64,000 bases of DNA from Zygnema circumcarinatum SAG 698-1b (lineage: Eukaryota; Plantae; Zygnematophyceae): assembly GCA_037447605.1 (NCBI GenBank), contig CM074807.1:1116001-1180000 (forward strand). Direction: 5' to 3'. Shown here one piece after another: positions 10,098 through 53,629 of this stretch. Both the position numbers and the translations under genes were made by a program. The notes below the pieces were generated by a model, which saw only the letters and a program-made list of their open reading frames with translations, searched no databases and was not told where the DNA came from. How positions within the stretch are numbered: position 1 is the first letter of the stretch; each line of letters opens with the position of its first letter.

Positions 10098-12569
10098 ATG
10101 GCTTCCAGCAGCTCACAGACGCTGGAGGCGGCACTTGAGCGAGTCCAGCAGCAGCTTGGAAGAAAGGCTTCTTTTGAGGAAGGTTTAAAGCGCCTTGCGT
10201 TGATTGTGGAGCAGAATTACGCATCTGCCTTACCGGAACAGCAGCGAGAGGTGCCAACATAACCACTTTTTGCCTCTCGTTTCTCTGGCTCTGATCTTCC
10301 GTTGGTCTTCTCTGTGTTGCTCTCAAATTTGGGGCTTTAAAACTATCATGGTTTCTTGCGGGGCTGGTCTCTTACGACGAATTTGCGCAAGAAAGACAAT
10401 GATTTTATACAGGTTTCAAAGCGTCTTGTAGGATATGTAATGTTTGATTTATTACGCTGAAGTCTGCTGCATATTCACTGTGATTTTCCATGGTATGCAT
10501 CGAATCTATCCACATATCAATCCATGTCGAAAAACTGTCCATCACAATGTGAAAGGAGTTGCAAGCACGAGTTTTTTCTAGTCAGCTGGGAATGTAGAAT
10601 GGAAGTACTCCTACAAGTGGAGTGTGAACAGAAGGGATGGCATTAGATCATCAGGCCGAAACTGCAAACCTATGATCGAAAACTCGAATATGGGAATTTG
10701 CGAATTCGGAATTCGTAGCGGGAATGGGTTAGCTATGATTTGGTAATATAATACGATGCTCGTACAGACTGCAGAACATGGTGAAAAGAATATGAAAAGG
10801 GAAACTCTACTTTGTGGTACACAAGGGAATCCAACACATTGAAAAATATGATCAAGTCATAATCTTGAAACGACCATATGGTAATCCTCATCATGTTCCT
10901 CTATATTTAAGATACCCCACAATGCCTCTCGTCCGAGCTTAATCCTTACGAATTCACATGAACCAATTAGCGGCTTTTTGGATCATAGCTCCAACGGCGA
11001 TTCGCGGAAGGTGGATCCAAGCAGATGTAATTGTGCCTCTGTCTTGAAAAAAGGGGATAGACTACCCAAAAAAAGTGGGAGCCGGTGCCGCTGGACCTAT
11101 ACCATTGAAATTTTGAAATTAACAGGTCCAATTATAAATTATGCTACATTAGCTGGTTTCGGTCATCGGCTGAAATGATCTGACATGAACGCGGAAAAAG
11201 GCCTATCTGCACACGAGCTAAGTGATACATATGTGTCTCAGAACTACATGGGCACCTCATCTGACGCGAGGTATCGTCTTCTTCCTCCCTTTGTTGTGTT
11301 TTATTGATCTTGAACGGCCTTTGTCGGTTCATGCTGCAGATTTTTACCGCTGTACGGAGGGTTGGCACCCTTCTGCAAACCCGCTATACATCTCGAGGTT
11401 TCTGGACGGCAGGGCTCCGTTTGTTCTCAAAAACTCAGCCATTAGTTTGTAGTCAACTTGAAATGCGTCAACTTCGTGGCTTCATTGACCAGGCGAAAGA
11501 GATCATTGGTGAAGAACGTCCAATCATGGAGGAGCCCACCAACACAGCTTTTGCAGCACCCATGACAGGTCAACAGCAGAACAGACCCGACCTTTCTCTG
11601 TAGAGTGAAAGAAGTTTACTTTTGCGTAGGATGGAGAGACAGGAAGTGTCCATTTCAAGCACTCAGAGAACTATCACTTGCACTGAGAAACAGATAACCC
11701 TAATATCTAACCGTTCCTAATGTTTGTATAACTTTGGGGAACAGTCTGGCATGTGTGTTTGCCTGCAACCCCCTTCTCACTATGGATGGATACTCTTAAT
11801 TTCTTGTGTAGGATCTCCATTTCTATTTGAGGGCCAACTATCAGCAGGTGCTACTCCGACAACTCCTGCCTGGTTGATGGCGCAAACTGTGACCTTGTCT
11901 CTCCTTAGCGAGCAGCATGTTGAACCTCCTCATCCCGACCAGCCGGAAGAAAGGAATGTGAGGGAGAGGAACAGAGGCAGAGAGGGTGAGGGAGAGAGGG
12001 CAAGTGAGGAATCATTGAATGTGAGAGGAATACTAGACGAGTTTCTCAGGGCGGAGGAACTGAACCGGCAGGATGCGGGAACAGGAAGCATGGAGGAGGC
12101 AGATGATAGGACTGTAGATGATGTTCATAGAAACAGTGATCATCAGTCAGGAGCAATACCTTCTGAAGAAGTGCAGCCGGAGATTACTCCGACCGAACAA
12201 GACGATGCGGATATGCACCAAAATGCAGAAAACTCACCAGCTTCTAATTCAGTACGAAGCTCTCCAACGTCGGGAATAGGGAGGCAGAGAGGGCAACGTA
12301 TGGTTCGATCGGGCTCAGAAAACTCACTGATGGACAATGGTCTCCAAGATGAGCAAAATCGGCAGCGGGCCACTGAAGCTCGCCGCCGGTTGCAGGAGAT
12401 GCTGAGTGCTTGGGGGAGGCCTGTTCCGGACTACCTTCAAGTTATGCGAGCAGCTATGTTGCATGCACATGGAGAGGACATTCCCGGCCTGCAAGAAGCA
12501 CTCGACTTGACGATGCAGGTGGGTAGGGAGGGGTCGGGATCGGATCTTCAACTCTTTGCAATTGGCTGC

Positions 12570-12601
<32 letters not shown>

Positions 12602-14355
12602 AGGGATAGGGAGAGGGAGAGGGAGAGGGAGAGGGAGAGGGAGAGGGAGAGGGAGAGGGAGAGGGAGAGGGAGAGGGAGAGGGAGAGGGAGAGGGAGAGG
12701 GAGAGGGAGAGGGAGAGGGAGAGGGAGAGGGAGAGGGAGAGGGAGAGGGAGAGGGAGAGGGAGAGGGAGAGGGAGAGGGAGAGGGAGAGGGAGAGGGAGA
12801 GGGAGAGGGAGAGGGAGAGGGAGAGGGAGAGGGAGAGGGAGAGGGAGAGAGAGGGAGAGGGAGAGGGAGAGGGAGAGGGAGAGGGAGAGGGAGAGGGAGA
12901 AGGAGAGGGAGAGGGAGAGGGAGAGGGAGAGGGAGAGGGAGAGGGAGAGGGAGAGGGAGAGGGAGAGGGAGAGGGAGAGGGAGAGGGAGAGGGAGAGGGA
13001 GAGGGAGAGGGAGAGGGAGAGGGAGAGGGAAGAGGGAGAGGGAGAGAGGGAGAGGGAGAGGGAGAGGGAGAGGGAGAGGGAGAAGGAGAGGGAGAGGGAG
13101 AGGGAGAGGGAGAGGGAGAGGGAGAGGGAGAGGGAGAGGGAGAGGGAGAGGGAGAGGGAGAGGGAGAGGGAGAGGGAGAGGGAGAGGGAGGGAGAGGGAG
13201 AGGGAGAGGGAGAGGGAGAGGGAGAGGGAGAGGGAGAGGGAGAGGGAGAGGGAGAGGGAGAGGGAGAGGGAGAGGGAGAGGGAGAGGGAGAGGGAGAGGG
13301 AGAGGGAGAGGGAGAGGGAGAGGGAGAGGGAGAGGGAGAGGGAGAGGGAGAGGGAGAGGGAGAGGGAGAGGGAGAGGGAGAGGGAGAGGGAGAGGGAGAG
13401 GGAGAGGGAGAGGGAGAGGGAGAGGGAGAGAGAGGTGAGCTTGCTGGTTTGATCATTCACGTCCGATCATGCGAAATCATCGGTTTGTGTGCTGTGTGGT
13501 ATGGGAGTGAATCAAAGGAGAATCTTGACGTGTTTCTTTTTTTGTGTCTCCCTTCTTTTGGGTGCGCAGGCTCCTCCCAAGGGCCCTCCTCCCGCTTCAA
13601 AGGAAGAAGTTGCAAAATTGCCCCGCAAGCACGTGACAGCAGAATTGTCGTCCAAATTGGGTCCAGATTTGCAGTGCATCGTGTGCAGGGAGGCCTTCGC
13701 AAAGGACGAGTTGATGTTGGAGATGGAATGCAAGCATTTGTTTCACGAAGACTGCATTCTTCCGTGGCTGGTGAGTTCACTATCGGCACTTCCGTTGAAT
13801 GCCTTCAAGTTTCTGAAGTTAATGAATGACTTCAACACATCGTTAAGTTCCCAAAGTTCGTTAGGGAATGTCTCAGGGAGGCCTGCCTTGCTCCATCCAC
13901 GTTCTGATGGAACTCTGTAGATTAGCAAAATGAGGTTGAAGTCAGAAACCATTGGCTCCCTGGAGAAGAAAGTGCTTTGAAAAACCGCCGGAAATCCTTA
14001 TTCGGAAATCCAGGAAATGCAGAAACACCTGACAGCTGTTTCTCCATTGCTGGGACGACTCCTTTTCGAGCACTTGGGAATTGCAGGGAAAGTTTATGCA
14101 GGTGCTAAACAGTTGTGATCAGGCTGACATTGGTGTGAAGTTGTGTGTCATTATAGGCCCTTTGCATGCCGTGACGTTCTTTTTGATGCGTGAATGTGTT
14201 CACAGGAGCTGCACAACTCGTGCCCTTTGTGCCGGTTTGAAATGCGAACGGATGATGCGGACTATGAGCGGGCGAAGGAGCGGGAGAAAGAGGCGAGGGA
14301 GGAGAGACGTGGGGTAGAGAACGCTCTTCGAGAAGGCGAGCACATGTTCATGTGA
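10098..14355 (+). CDS. AIP2: AIP2-like RING-H2 E3 ubiquitin ligase, 5 exons
   Basis: N-terminal ...[22 protein letters not shown]..., FLFEGQL, then [25 protein letters not shown]...[15 protein letters not shown]|[13 protein letters not shown], and terminal [36 protein letters not shown], recognisably like plant AIP2. Confidence 0.9.
12571..13434 (+). repeat. (GAGAGG)n hexamer microsatellite / homopurine tract in AIP2 intron 3
   Basis: About 865 nt of G/A with a single T (near 12606). Lies between donor CAG|GT at 12519 and acceptor CAG at 13569, which join ALDLTMQ|APPKGPP in phase 0. Confidence 0.95.
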
Positions 14356-20620: not shown

Positions 20621-21553
20621 CTACCTATCCCTCGGCTTCTCTGGTGGCGGTTGGGCTAAGGCTTGCGCTAATGTCTGCGCTATTCTCAGCTGAAACGCAA
20701 GAGCCATCTCCATCATGTCCTTCTTCCATTGCTTGTCTCTCTCGTCCGCCTGCATCTGCCGCTCCTCCGCCCGCGTTTGGGCCTCTAAAATTCTCTCCAT
20801 AAGCGACGCGCTTGCATCGTCCGACAGAACTTTTCTTTTCTTCTTCTTCGTCATCACCTTTAGCCCGTCCTCCTCTCCCCCGTTATTCCCGCTGCTCATA
20901 GCCTTCCGATGCTCATGTTCCGGGTTCGAGAACTCGCCGCCATTCCGCTCTCCGCCAAGCTCGTTCGCCAAGCCCACGCTCGCACCTCGGTGCTGTGAGA
21001 AGCCCATCCCTGCCAGATTCTCACTTAGGGTTAGAGATGGTTTTGTGGGATCGCTTTGCACTGCTTCCAGCGATGACCGTGCATATCCAGACTGTGCAAA
21101 GACGGCGGGATCGGGAAGAAGCGCACCTCCTGAACCAAAGTTCGGGGTACTTGACACGGCCTTGCCCTTTTTCCCAAGCGCAAGCGCCATCGCTTCGAAG
21201 TAGGGCCACTCCATGGCTGATTTCCCGATTCCGCCTTTGTACTCTTCCTTACTAACATGCGCTTTGAACGCCTTCCGGAGGTTCTGAAGCTTATCTTGGC
21301 ACTGTTTCCAGGAAATATCTAGTCCAGGATGGTTTTCTATGAGAGTTTTTGCTATCTTCTCCCAGTGAGATCGTGTCAAGTTCCCTCCTCCCAGCATGTT
21401 GAATCGCTCGCTCCAACACTCGATCAGTGAAAAAGTGAGCTCCCTGCTCCATGTCAGCGGCGCTCTCTTCTCCTCCTCCGACTGATGCCAGGTCAGCGCT
21501 GCCGCCTGCGCTGCAGCCGTACCTTCCTGGGAGGCAGCCATGGCTGCCTCCAT
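20621..21553 (-). CDS. Trihelix (Myb/SANT-like DNA-binding) transcription factor
   Basis: 310-aa ORF with WSRELTFSLIECW...HWEKIA...SWKQCQDKLQNLRKAFK...WPYFEAM, a basic NLS (KKKKRK) and a C-terminal coiled coil. The 3' end may be extended by splicing (see findings). Confidence 0.88.
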   Translation of the reverse strand: MEAAMAASQEGTAAAQAAALTWHQSEEEKRAPLTWSRELTFSLIECWSERFNMLGGGNLTRSHWEKIAKTLIENHPGLDISWKQCQDKLQNLRKAFKAHVSKEEYKGGIGKSAMEWPYFEAMALALGKKGKAVSSTPNFGSGGALLPDPAVFAQSGYARSSLEAVQSDPTKPSLTLSENLAGMGFSQHRGASVGLANELGGERNGGEFSNPEHEHRKAMSSGNNGGEEDGLKVMTKKKKRKVLSDDASASLMERILEAQTRAEERQMQADERDKQWKKDMMEMALAFQLRIAQTLAQALAQPPPEKPRDR

Positions 21554-21879
21554 CCTCCCCTCCCTCCCAACAGAGAGGAACGGACGGAGCGGTCGGCCCC
21601 GACGGACGGAACGGCGGGACGGACGGCGACGGCAAAGTTGTCCTCTCGAGGTCGTTGACGCGCGCCGCCGCCGCGCACGCGCGACCCGCCCGGACGCGTC
21701 GCCACGTGGCGGACCTTGAGCCGTCCGATCACCTCCGGAAGCCGGTTTGCGCCGTCCGATTGTGTAGTTTGGTGTACGGGAGCCCGACGTGGAAAAATAA
21801 ATAAAAATAATTTAACATAGCAGATCTGAATTTTAACAAACGGTTGCATGTGACGCGCTGGCGAGTTGTTGAACTGTAT

Positions 21880-22656
21880 CACAGATCGGACCATTAGACA
21901 AACCAGTCGACTGGTTGGCAACCAGTGGTTGCGGACCGAAACAACCATTCGACTGGTTGCCAACCAGTGGATGCCACTGGTTCGCAACCAGTCGACTGGT
22001 TGCCAACCAGTGGCATCCACTGGTTCCAAACCAGTCGACTGGTTGCCAACCAGTGGCATCCACTGGTTGGAAACCAGTCGACTGGTTGCGAACCAGTGGC
22101 GCAGGACTGAAACAACCATTCGACTGGTTCGGAACCAGTGATCAAATGGTTGGCAACCATTAAATTGTCGGTGTACGGATCCCCGTATTGTCGATATACT
22201 GTAAATATTTTCCGTACGATTTTCCGGCAATTTTTCCGGCAATTTTTGAAAATTGCCGGAAAATTGTACGGAAAATATTTACAGTATATCGACAATACGG
22301 GGATCCGTACACCGACAATTTAATGGTTGCCAACCATTTGATTTAATGGATATAACCATTAGACTGGTTGCCAACCAGTGCTGCCGGATCGAAACAACCA
22401 TTCGACTGGTTGCCAACCAGTGGATGCCACTGGTTCACAACCAGTCGACTGGTTGCCAACCAGTGCCGCCGGATCGAAACAACCATTCGACTGGTTGCCA
22501 ACCAGTGGCATCCACTGGTTCCGAACCAGTCGACTGGTTGCCAACCAGTGGCATCCACTGGTTCCAAACCAGTCGACTGGTTGCCGACCAGTAGACGTCC
22601 AACCATTGCCATCCAATGGTTGTCCAATGGTTGCCGATCCACTGGTCCGAACTGTG
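21880..22656. mobile_element. Non-autonomous TIR element filled with palindromic tandem units (hAT-like by its 8-bp TSD)
   Basis: TIRs CACAGATCGGACCA / TGGTCCGAACTGTG (13 of 14 match). Flanks AACTGTAT (21872-21879) and AACTGTTT (22657-22664). Twelve ~43-bp AACCA/TGGTT units surround a central 202-bp hairpin. Confidence 0.7.
22141..22342. repeat. Perfect 77-bp inverted repeat (hairpin/cruciform)
   Basis: 22141-22217 is the exact reverse complement of 22266-22342; the spacer is itself partly self-complementary (TCCGGCAATTTT/AAAATTGCCGGA). Confidence 0.92.
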
Positions 22657-22704
22657 AACTGTTTGTGGTTTTAGGGTTGAGTTCGGTAGGTCGTGACGTA
22701 GGCG

Positions 22705-22776
22705 TATCGTATCGCATCGTATCGTATCGTATTATTGCATTTATCGATGCTTTGCAACGATATCGGTACAGCATAT
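22705..22776. repeat. GTATCG-rich repeat cluster, reverse-oriented relative of 17735-17812
   Basis: CGTATCGTATCGCATCGTATCGTATCG...CGATATCGG. Confidence 0.5.

Positions 22777-40775: not shown

Positions 40776-53629
<12,854 letters not shown>

Follow-up and report, generated by a model that had tools for sequence, protein, structure and literature searches.

A probable 777-bp non-autonomous DNA transposon of hAT type with tandem arrays of palindromic half-sites in Zygnema

Introduction

The inverted ends of the maize element Ac are 11 bp long, its target duplication is 8 bp, and its transposase binds cooperatively to subterminal AAACGG hexamers (PMC3260210). In Hermes, two BED domains bind cooperatively to a quasi-palindromic pair of repeats beside the inverted end, and the phasing of these repeats is critical (PMC10368747). 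Short subterminal repeats are likewise bound by the transposases of Tag1, Tol2 and Herves (PMC3143072). Repeats carried by a transposon can have a further fate, as tandem repeats within Tetris, a foldback-like transposon of Drosophila virilis, can seed satellites (PMC4079207).

Here we describe a non-coding element of 777 bp at positions 21880-22656 of a 64-kb stretch of Zygnema DNA (the whole of this stretch is referred to as the window). We assign a probability of about 0.7 to the reading that this element represents a single copy of a cut-and-paste DNA transposon that is non-autonomous and non-coding and that was, most probably, moved by a hAT transposase encoded elsewhere. We infer that the single copy examined is mobile. 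In general terms, it can be classed as a MITE of hAT-like character and foldback shape whose subterminal repeats are amplified; it is of a known kind and not a new system.

The element resembles Ac/Ds of maize, and especially the short non-coding Ds-like forms, in having an 8-bp duplication, short ends starting with CA and no coding capacity, as well as many copies of a short motif within the subterminal ~200 bp at both ends (PMC3260210). The Ac hexamers, however, are scattered and non-palindromic, whereas the Zygnema element has 7-bp half-sites arranged as strict dyads in 43-bp tandem units, which make up ~70% of its length. There is also a likeness to Hermes, as a half-site is present inside each end and dyads follow at a fixed spacing, all of these being candidate sites. 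In contrast, the Hermes motif is 4 bp in length (AAGT) and is present in 14-17 copies per end in an asymmetric distribution, while the Zygnema element has ~48 half-sites, near-identical on both sides. Elements of the Tetris or foldback type are similarly non-autonomous, with internal tandem repeats and strong self-complementarity (fold z of -48.8 for the Zygnema element), but have units of ~220 bp rather than 43 bp. Furthermore, the Zygnema arrays are direct and not inverted, an arrangement that is atypical of a classic foldback element. A more distant comparison is with Tc1/pogo elements, which generate a TA duplication and not one of 8 bp and are from a different superfamily to hAT. For the Emigrant MITE and the pogo-like Lemi1 of Arabidopsis, the proteins of the related autonomous element are reported to bind the ends and subterminal motifs of the MITE (PMC1636448); to this extent Emigrant, as a MITE with inverted ends and repeated subterminal motifs, resembles the element described here.

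Results

The element is delimited by inverted ends. The left terminal inverted repeat, CACAGATCGGACCA(TT), is located at 21880-21895 on the forward strand, and its inner part, GACCATT, is a variant of the half-site. The right repeat (reverse complement CACAGTTCGGACCA) is at 22643-22656 on the reverse strand and was identified by direct reading and by a pattern search. These ends match at 13 of 14 positions, or at 14 of 16 when lengthened to 16 bp, and the only zero-mismatch matches to CACAGWTCGGACCA in the 64 kb are at 21880-21893 and 22643-22656. A GACCAKT half-site begins 10 bp in from the tip of each end, and the inverted end is better read as a 16-bp sequence, CACAGWTCGGACCAKT, that includes the half-site. 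The ends are flanked by two copies of an 8-bp duplication, AACTGTAT at 21872-21879 and AACTGTTT at 22657-22664, which are identical at 7 of 8 positions. Both copies were read directly and were also assessed with a boundary scan and with shuffled sequences. An unbiased scan for inverted ends with an 8-bp duplication detected 21880/22656 as the sole such pair outside the arrays, and this combination was reproduced in 0 of 1,000 shuffles of the two flanks. Ends and flanking duplication are, therefore, beyond chance on the single copy examined. A first-pass annotation of this DNA had proposed 14-bp terminal inverted repeats, a near-perfect 8-bp target duplication and a bounded transposon; the repeats and the duplication were found where it had placed them, and the proposal of a bounded transposon is supported by this significance on a single copy.

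Most of the interior consists of repeated palindromes. A 16-bp palindrome, AACCAGTCGACTGGTT, is present at up to two mismatches in 12 copies, with 6 on the left (21901-22129) and 6 on the right (22354-22582), and in no copies elsewhere in the window (0.02 expected by chance). The units headed by these palindromes fall into three classes: six typical units of 43 bp, four 42-bp variants that have GGAYCGAAAC or GGACTGAAAC as their last bases, and two irregular units, one at the inner edge of the left array and one at the outer edge of the right array. Type A units are 42 bp long and have GGAYCGAAAC in place of the second stem, always with the AACCATT variant next. Types B and C are 43 bp long and have a 9-bp stem whose loop reads GGATGCC in one orientation and GGCATCC in the other. 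Nearly every unit has a different 3-nt spacer following its second stem. The left array (21901-22140) is made up of six units of 42/43 bp, ordered A, B, C, C, A, D, all of which begin with AACCAGTCGACTGGTT or AACCATTCGACTGGTT; Tandem Repeats Finder reported a period of 43, with 4.7 copies and 85% matches. The right array (22354-22596) has the order A, B, A, C, C, X and is in direct orientation with respect to the left array. In this array, Tandem Repeats Finder detected an 85-bp higher-order A+B repeat with 93% matches in addition to a 43-bp array, and the array is represented by repeat family D1 at 92%. Beyond it is a right subterminal stretch (22597-22642) with degenerate half-sites, namely one AACCATT and two AATGGTT. 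A shortened type-A-like unit at 22628-22648 is inverted relative to the arrays and closes in the ACTGGTC half-site of the right terminal repeat.

With 43/85-bp tandem arrays making up most of the element, it could be argued that this locus is a palindromic minisatellite that grew locally and is not mobile, or a host cis-regulatory or insulator array, and that the ends and duplication are coincidental. The boundary scan gives some substance to this argument, as spurious pairs of inverted ends and duplications are numerous inside the palindromic arrays, and a host array would be in keeping with the promoter-proximal position of the element upstream of a trihelix gene. However, the pair at 21880/22656 flanks the arrays rather than lying within them, such flanking ends together with an 8-bp duplication arose in none of the 1,000 shuffles, and the outermost 9 bp of each end have no relation to the repeat unit. 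A plain minisatellite was rejected because the arrays lie between inverted ends that are not part of them and that are flanked by an 8-bp duplication, and we consider a non-mobile origin of either sort to be highly improbable.

The orientation of the two arrays was examined by alignment. A direct alignment of left and right arrays has 90% identity and a score of 298, while an inverted alignment has 86% identity and a score of 205; the quality of the inverted alignment is due solely to the palindromic nature of the units. The asymmetric markers fit the direct reading, as the tails of the type A units are on the same strand, A followed by B opens both arrays, and loop orientation is equal at equal rank on the left and on the right. 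One array is a direct copy of the other and not its mirror image. The truly inverted parts of the element are the 16-bp terminal repeat (14/16), the type-A-like unit inside the right end (~30 bp in all for these two parts) and the central palindrome. The whole element as single-stranded DNA has a predicted fold of -334 kcal/mol (z = -48.8). With respect to the two inverted arms of a foldback element, the arms do pair at 86% in inverted orientation, but this pairing is due to the palindromic units and the direct identity is 90%. The first-pass annotation had been correct in describing twelve double-palindrome units, six on each side of a central hairpin, with a typical unit of 43 bp and variants in which the second stem is replaced. 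A mirror-image lattice is contradicted by the direct relationship of the arrays, which that annotation had missed, as it had the half-site inside each inverted end.

Between the arrays is an AT-richer palindrome (22141-22342) whose 94-nt arms (22141-22234 and 22249-22342) are 99% complementary around a 14-nt centre and which folds as one long hairpin. The outer ends of this palindrome carry AATGGTT-N3-AACCATT dyads, and the centre is therefore part of the same motif system as the arrays. Within positions 22219-22262, a 12-bp unit, TTTTCCGGCAAT, is present in two copies on the left arm and one on the right, a copy-number difference that represents a small slippage in an otherwise 99% palindrome. 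A search of Rfam gave no match at the gathering threshold, the best being MIR6140 with 77.4 bits against a threshold of 140. A miRNA precursor was rejected, as unrelated miRNA models matched both strands, all below threshold, and were read as generic hairpin matches.

These features of the centre and of the arrays bear on whether the element arose as a composite of two events, either through entry of a palindromic (foldback) element into a single 12-unit array of an older element or through a head-to-tail join of two array-bearing copies in which the inner ends were lost. The arrays, as direct copies which both open with A and then B, would fit such a history; the right array starts with AACCATTAGAC, which is similar to the left terminus GGACCATTAGAC, and the central palindrome (99%) looks much younger than the arrays (80-93%). 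Nevertheless, 22141-22342 is not flanked by a target duplication, and a nested insertion of the palindrome was rejected on this ground. In addition, the palindrome bears the family's own dyad variant at its outer ends, and no separate copy of the core is present in the window. A composite origin is, in our judgement, improbable. Under both scenarios, the whole would remain a transposon delimited by its inverted ends and a duplication.

The palindromes are built from short half-sites. There are 36 AACCAGT/ACTGGTT half-sites within the 777 bp as compared to 11 in the other 63 kb. These sites alternate in orientation with start-to-start spacings of 9, 10, 14 and 10 bp, giving a total of 43 bp; hence, there are two convergent palindrome centres at a distance of 21.5 bp, or ~2 helical turns. 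This phased lattice of AACCA/TGGTT half-sites had been noted in the first-pass annotation, and the 43-bp phasing agrees with it. The 17-bp dyad ACTGGTT-N3-AACCAGT is present in 17 perfect copies, against an expectation of 0, with perfect copies on both sides of the element and a constant geometry despite nine different N3 spacers. A further three dyads are variants, one being ACTGGTT-N3-GACCAGT, found on the outer margin of the right array, and the other two the AATGGTT-N3-AACCATT dyads of the central palindrome. Across 26 alignable columns, off-consensus cells were found in 6 of 252 for half-site columns and 6 of 60 for spacer columns (Fisher p = 0.014). The half-sites are conserved better than the spacers, although this contrast is modest and could alternatively arise from sequence conversion that maintains the palindromes. 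Short repeated motifs are present in the subterminal ~200-250 bp at both ends, with the first ones inside the inverted ends. The better conservation of half-sites than of spacers, together with the hAT precedents, leads us to interpret the array as a dense set of candidate transposase-binding sites, an interpretation with which the observations are consistent. A literature search with the half-site strings returned noise matches only.

The element is without coding capacity, and the sole mechanically called ORF across it has no Pfam match. No transposase domain was detected with Pfam among the 18 long ORFs of the window. Searches of the 64-kb window with the 16-bp palindrome and the ends, and with BLASTN for any fragment, found no second copy. 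The exact unit had no matches in metagenome and viral contig collections, while a looser pattern retrieved eight metagenome loci. These were rejected as kin of the element, none of them being a relative. Four of the eight (L002, L004, L005 and L008) look like members of a single hAT-type family, unrelated to the element, whose ends and duplications were verified for L002 and L005 only; L008 has a terminal 9-mer in common with these two, and L004 is apparently related by subterminal motifs only. The remaining four look like chance matches.

The two verified loci, on JGI metagenome contigs, are complete non-coding elements of 1.3-1.5 kb (L002, 1982-3316; L005, 2588-4066) without long ORFs. They have 19-bp TAGTG-type inverted ends, TAGTGTTTG..., perfect 8-bp duplications (GTTGTATA and ACTATAAC) and subterminal RACYRGTY motifs, including ACTGGTT-AAT-AACCAGT dyads, at 140-230 bp from one end. 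On these sequence hallmarks they are hAT-type elements and constitute an analogue of the Zygnema element, not kin. An 8-bp duplication, short inverted ends and a subterminal ACTGGTT-N3-AACCAGT dyad are common to these elements and the Zygnema element, the dyad being the motif through which they were retrieved. They differ in that their ends (TAGTGTTTGRAAG...) are unrelated to those of the Zygnema element, in their low number of dyads, and in the lack of both a 43-bp array and a central palindrome. The value of these analogues is in showing that elements with the hallmarks of hAT do have this dyad among their subterminal repeats.

Assignment to the hAT superfamily was based on the length of the duplication, the shape of the ends, which are short, and the subterminal repeats, the last by analogy; on these grounds the element is probably a hAT member. 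Elements of this superfamily have short inverted ends of about 10-25 bp with a 5'-YARNG consensus and a target preference of nTnnnnAn. The CACAG end of the Zygnema element fits four of the five consensus positions, including Y1, A2 and G5, with a C in place of R at position 3. The duplication AACTGTAT, from a single copy, fits one of the two fixed positions of the target preference (A at position 7 but A and not T at position 2). Two other superfamilies were rejected. For CACTA (En/Spm), the termini are CACAG and not CACTA, and the 3-bp flanks differ (TAT and AAC). Mutator-like elements (MULEs) have 9-11-bp duplications and long inverted ends of about 100-200 bp; the 9-bp flanks of the Zygnema element, GAACTGTAT and AACTGTTTG, are mismatched in register and its true inverted ends are ~16 bp.

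The imperfect fit of the third base of CACAG and of the duplication raises the question of whether an element of this same non-autonomous, cut-and-paste kind was moved by a transposase of a non-hAT superfamily, such as P, Novosib, Zisupton, Merlin or a short-ended MULE. Several of the non-hAT superfamilies generate duplications of 7-9 bp, and elements of foldback shape are known from both P and MULE. No transposase that can be linked to the element is present within the window, which leaves room for such a mover. However, an 8-bp duplication with 14-16-bp ends and short subterminal repeats within ~250 bp of both ends is the classic hAT combination (PMC3260210, PMC10368747). In addition, the CACTA-type 3-bp and Mutator-type 9-bp flanks are out of register, and the metagenome elements that bear the dyad have canonical hAT TAGTG ends with 8-bp duplications. 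We regard a non-hAT mover as unlikely.

Discussion

Our preferred reading, in which a hAT transposase acted on the element in trans, leads to a specific model of end recognition. The transposase would recognise the 16-bp ends, CACAGWTCGGACCAKT, with one half-site in each, as well as the 7-bp AACCAGT half-sites set as 17-bp ACTGGTT-N3-AACCAGT dyads. These dyads may be read by paired DNA-binding domains, for which Hermes, with its quasi-palindromic pair of repeats, and Ac, with its subterminal hexamers, are the models. A dense series of roughly helix-phased sites could concentrate the transposase and help to draw both ends together, and insertion would have duplicated 8 bp of the target. In this model, the subterminal transposase-binding repeats have expanded into the 43/85-bp tandem arrays, which may have grown through tandem duplication of 43-bp units and of the 85-bp A+B higher-order unit. 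The two arrays would have a common history in direct orientation, and direct arrays at both ends would be tolerated because palindromic sites read alike both ways.

It is conceivable that end recognition goes beyond that of known hAT elements, such that a dimeric or paired-domain transposase reads the 17-bp dyad as its unit and coats ~20 helix-phased dyads per element in any orientation. We consider this a doubtful proposal with a low probability. If true, this mode would explain the direct arrays at both ends and why half-sites are kept while spacers drift. Recurrence of the dyad in hAT-type elements that are unrelated and belong to another organism would, in that case, be the signature of a clade of transposases whose DNA-binding specificity is conserved.

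On its own, the element is an ordinary genome annotation, a non-autonomous DNA transposon upstream of a gene. Its value is as an unusually clean example in which the putative transposase site is described at base resolution, with a 7-bp half-site, an N3 dyad and 43-bp phasing. This defined candidate site is a ready probe for binding assays and for a search for the autonomous element. The element may also serve as an illustration of arrays that grow out of subterminal repeats.

The neighbouring gene, which is outside of the element, contains a trihelix (Myb/SANT-like) ORF at 20621-21553 on the reverse strand (PF13837, E = 3.6e-12); no relative at E <= 1e-10 was found in the protein collection searched. 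The element is 327 bp upstream of the ATG of this ORF. A G-box, CCACGTGG, is present at 21702-21709, and the distance between G-box and element is 171 bp, as compared to the ~170 bp of the first-pass annotation. The G-box core is within a perfect 12-bp palindrome, CGCCACGTGGCG, at 21700-21711, ~150 bp upstream of the trihelix ATG. From its promoter-proximal place, the element could, speculatively, affect the trihelix promoter via methylation or small RNAs. Binding of host factors to the AACCA-type cores is pure speculation.

Other features of the window, which is nuclear DNA of the plant lineage, were also observed. A (CGTAT)x6 microsatellite at 22703-22732 is ~45 bp to the right of the target duplication of the element. 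An (AGAGGG) microsatellite with 144 copies and 97% matches occupies 12570-13434, inside a mechanically called 701-aa ORF (11724-13829), and accounts for the extreme skew, in both GC and AT, seen in the bin at 12-14 kb. Finally, exons for a PHD finger, a chromodomain and a CHD-II SANT-like domain are found at 40908-52494 on the forward strand; these predicted domains indicate a CHD3/PICKLE-type chromatin remodeller gene, of which the exon at 51058-52494 has, in the protein collections searched, only land-plant relatives (the liverwort Riccia, the lycophyte Diphasiastrum and angiosperms), with 42-47% identity.
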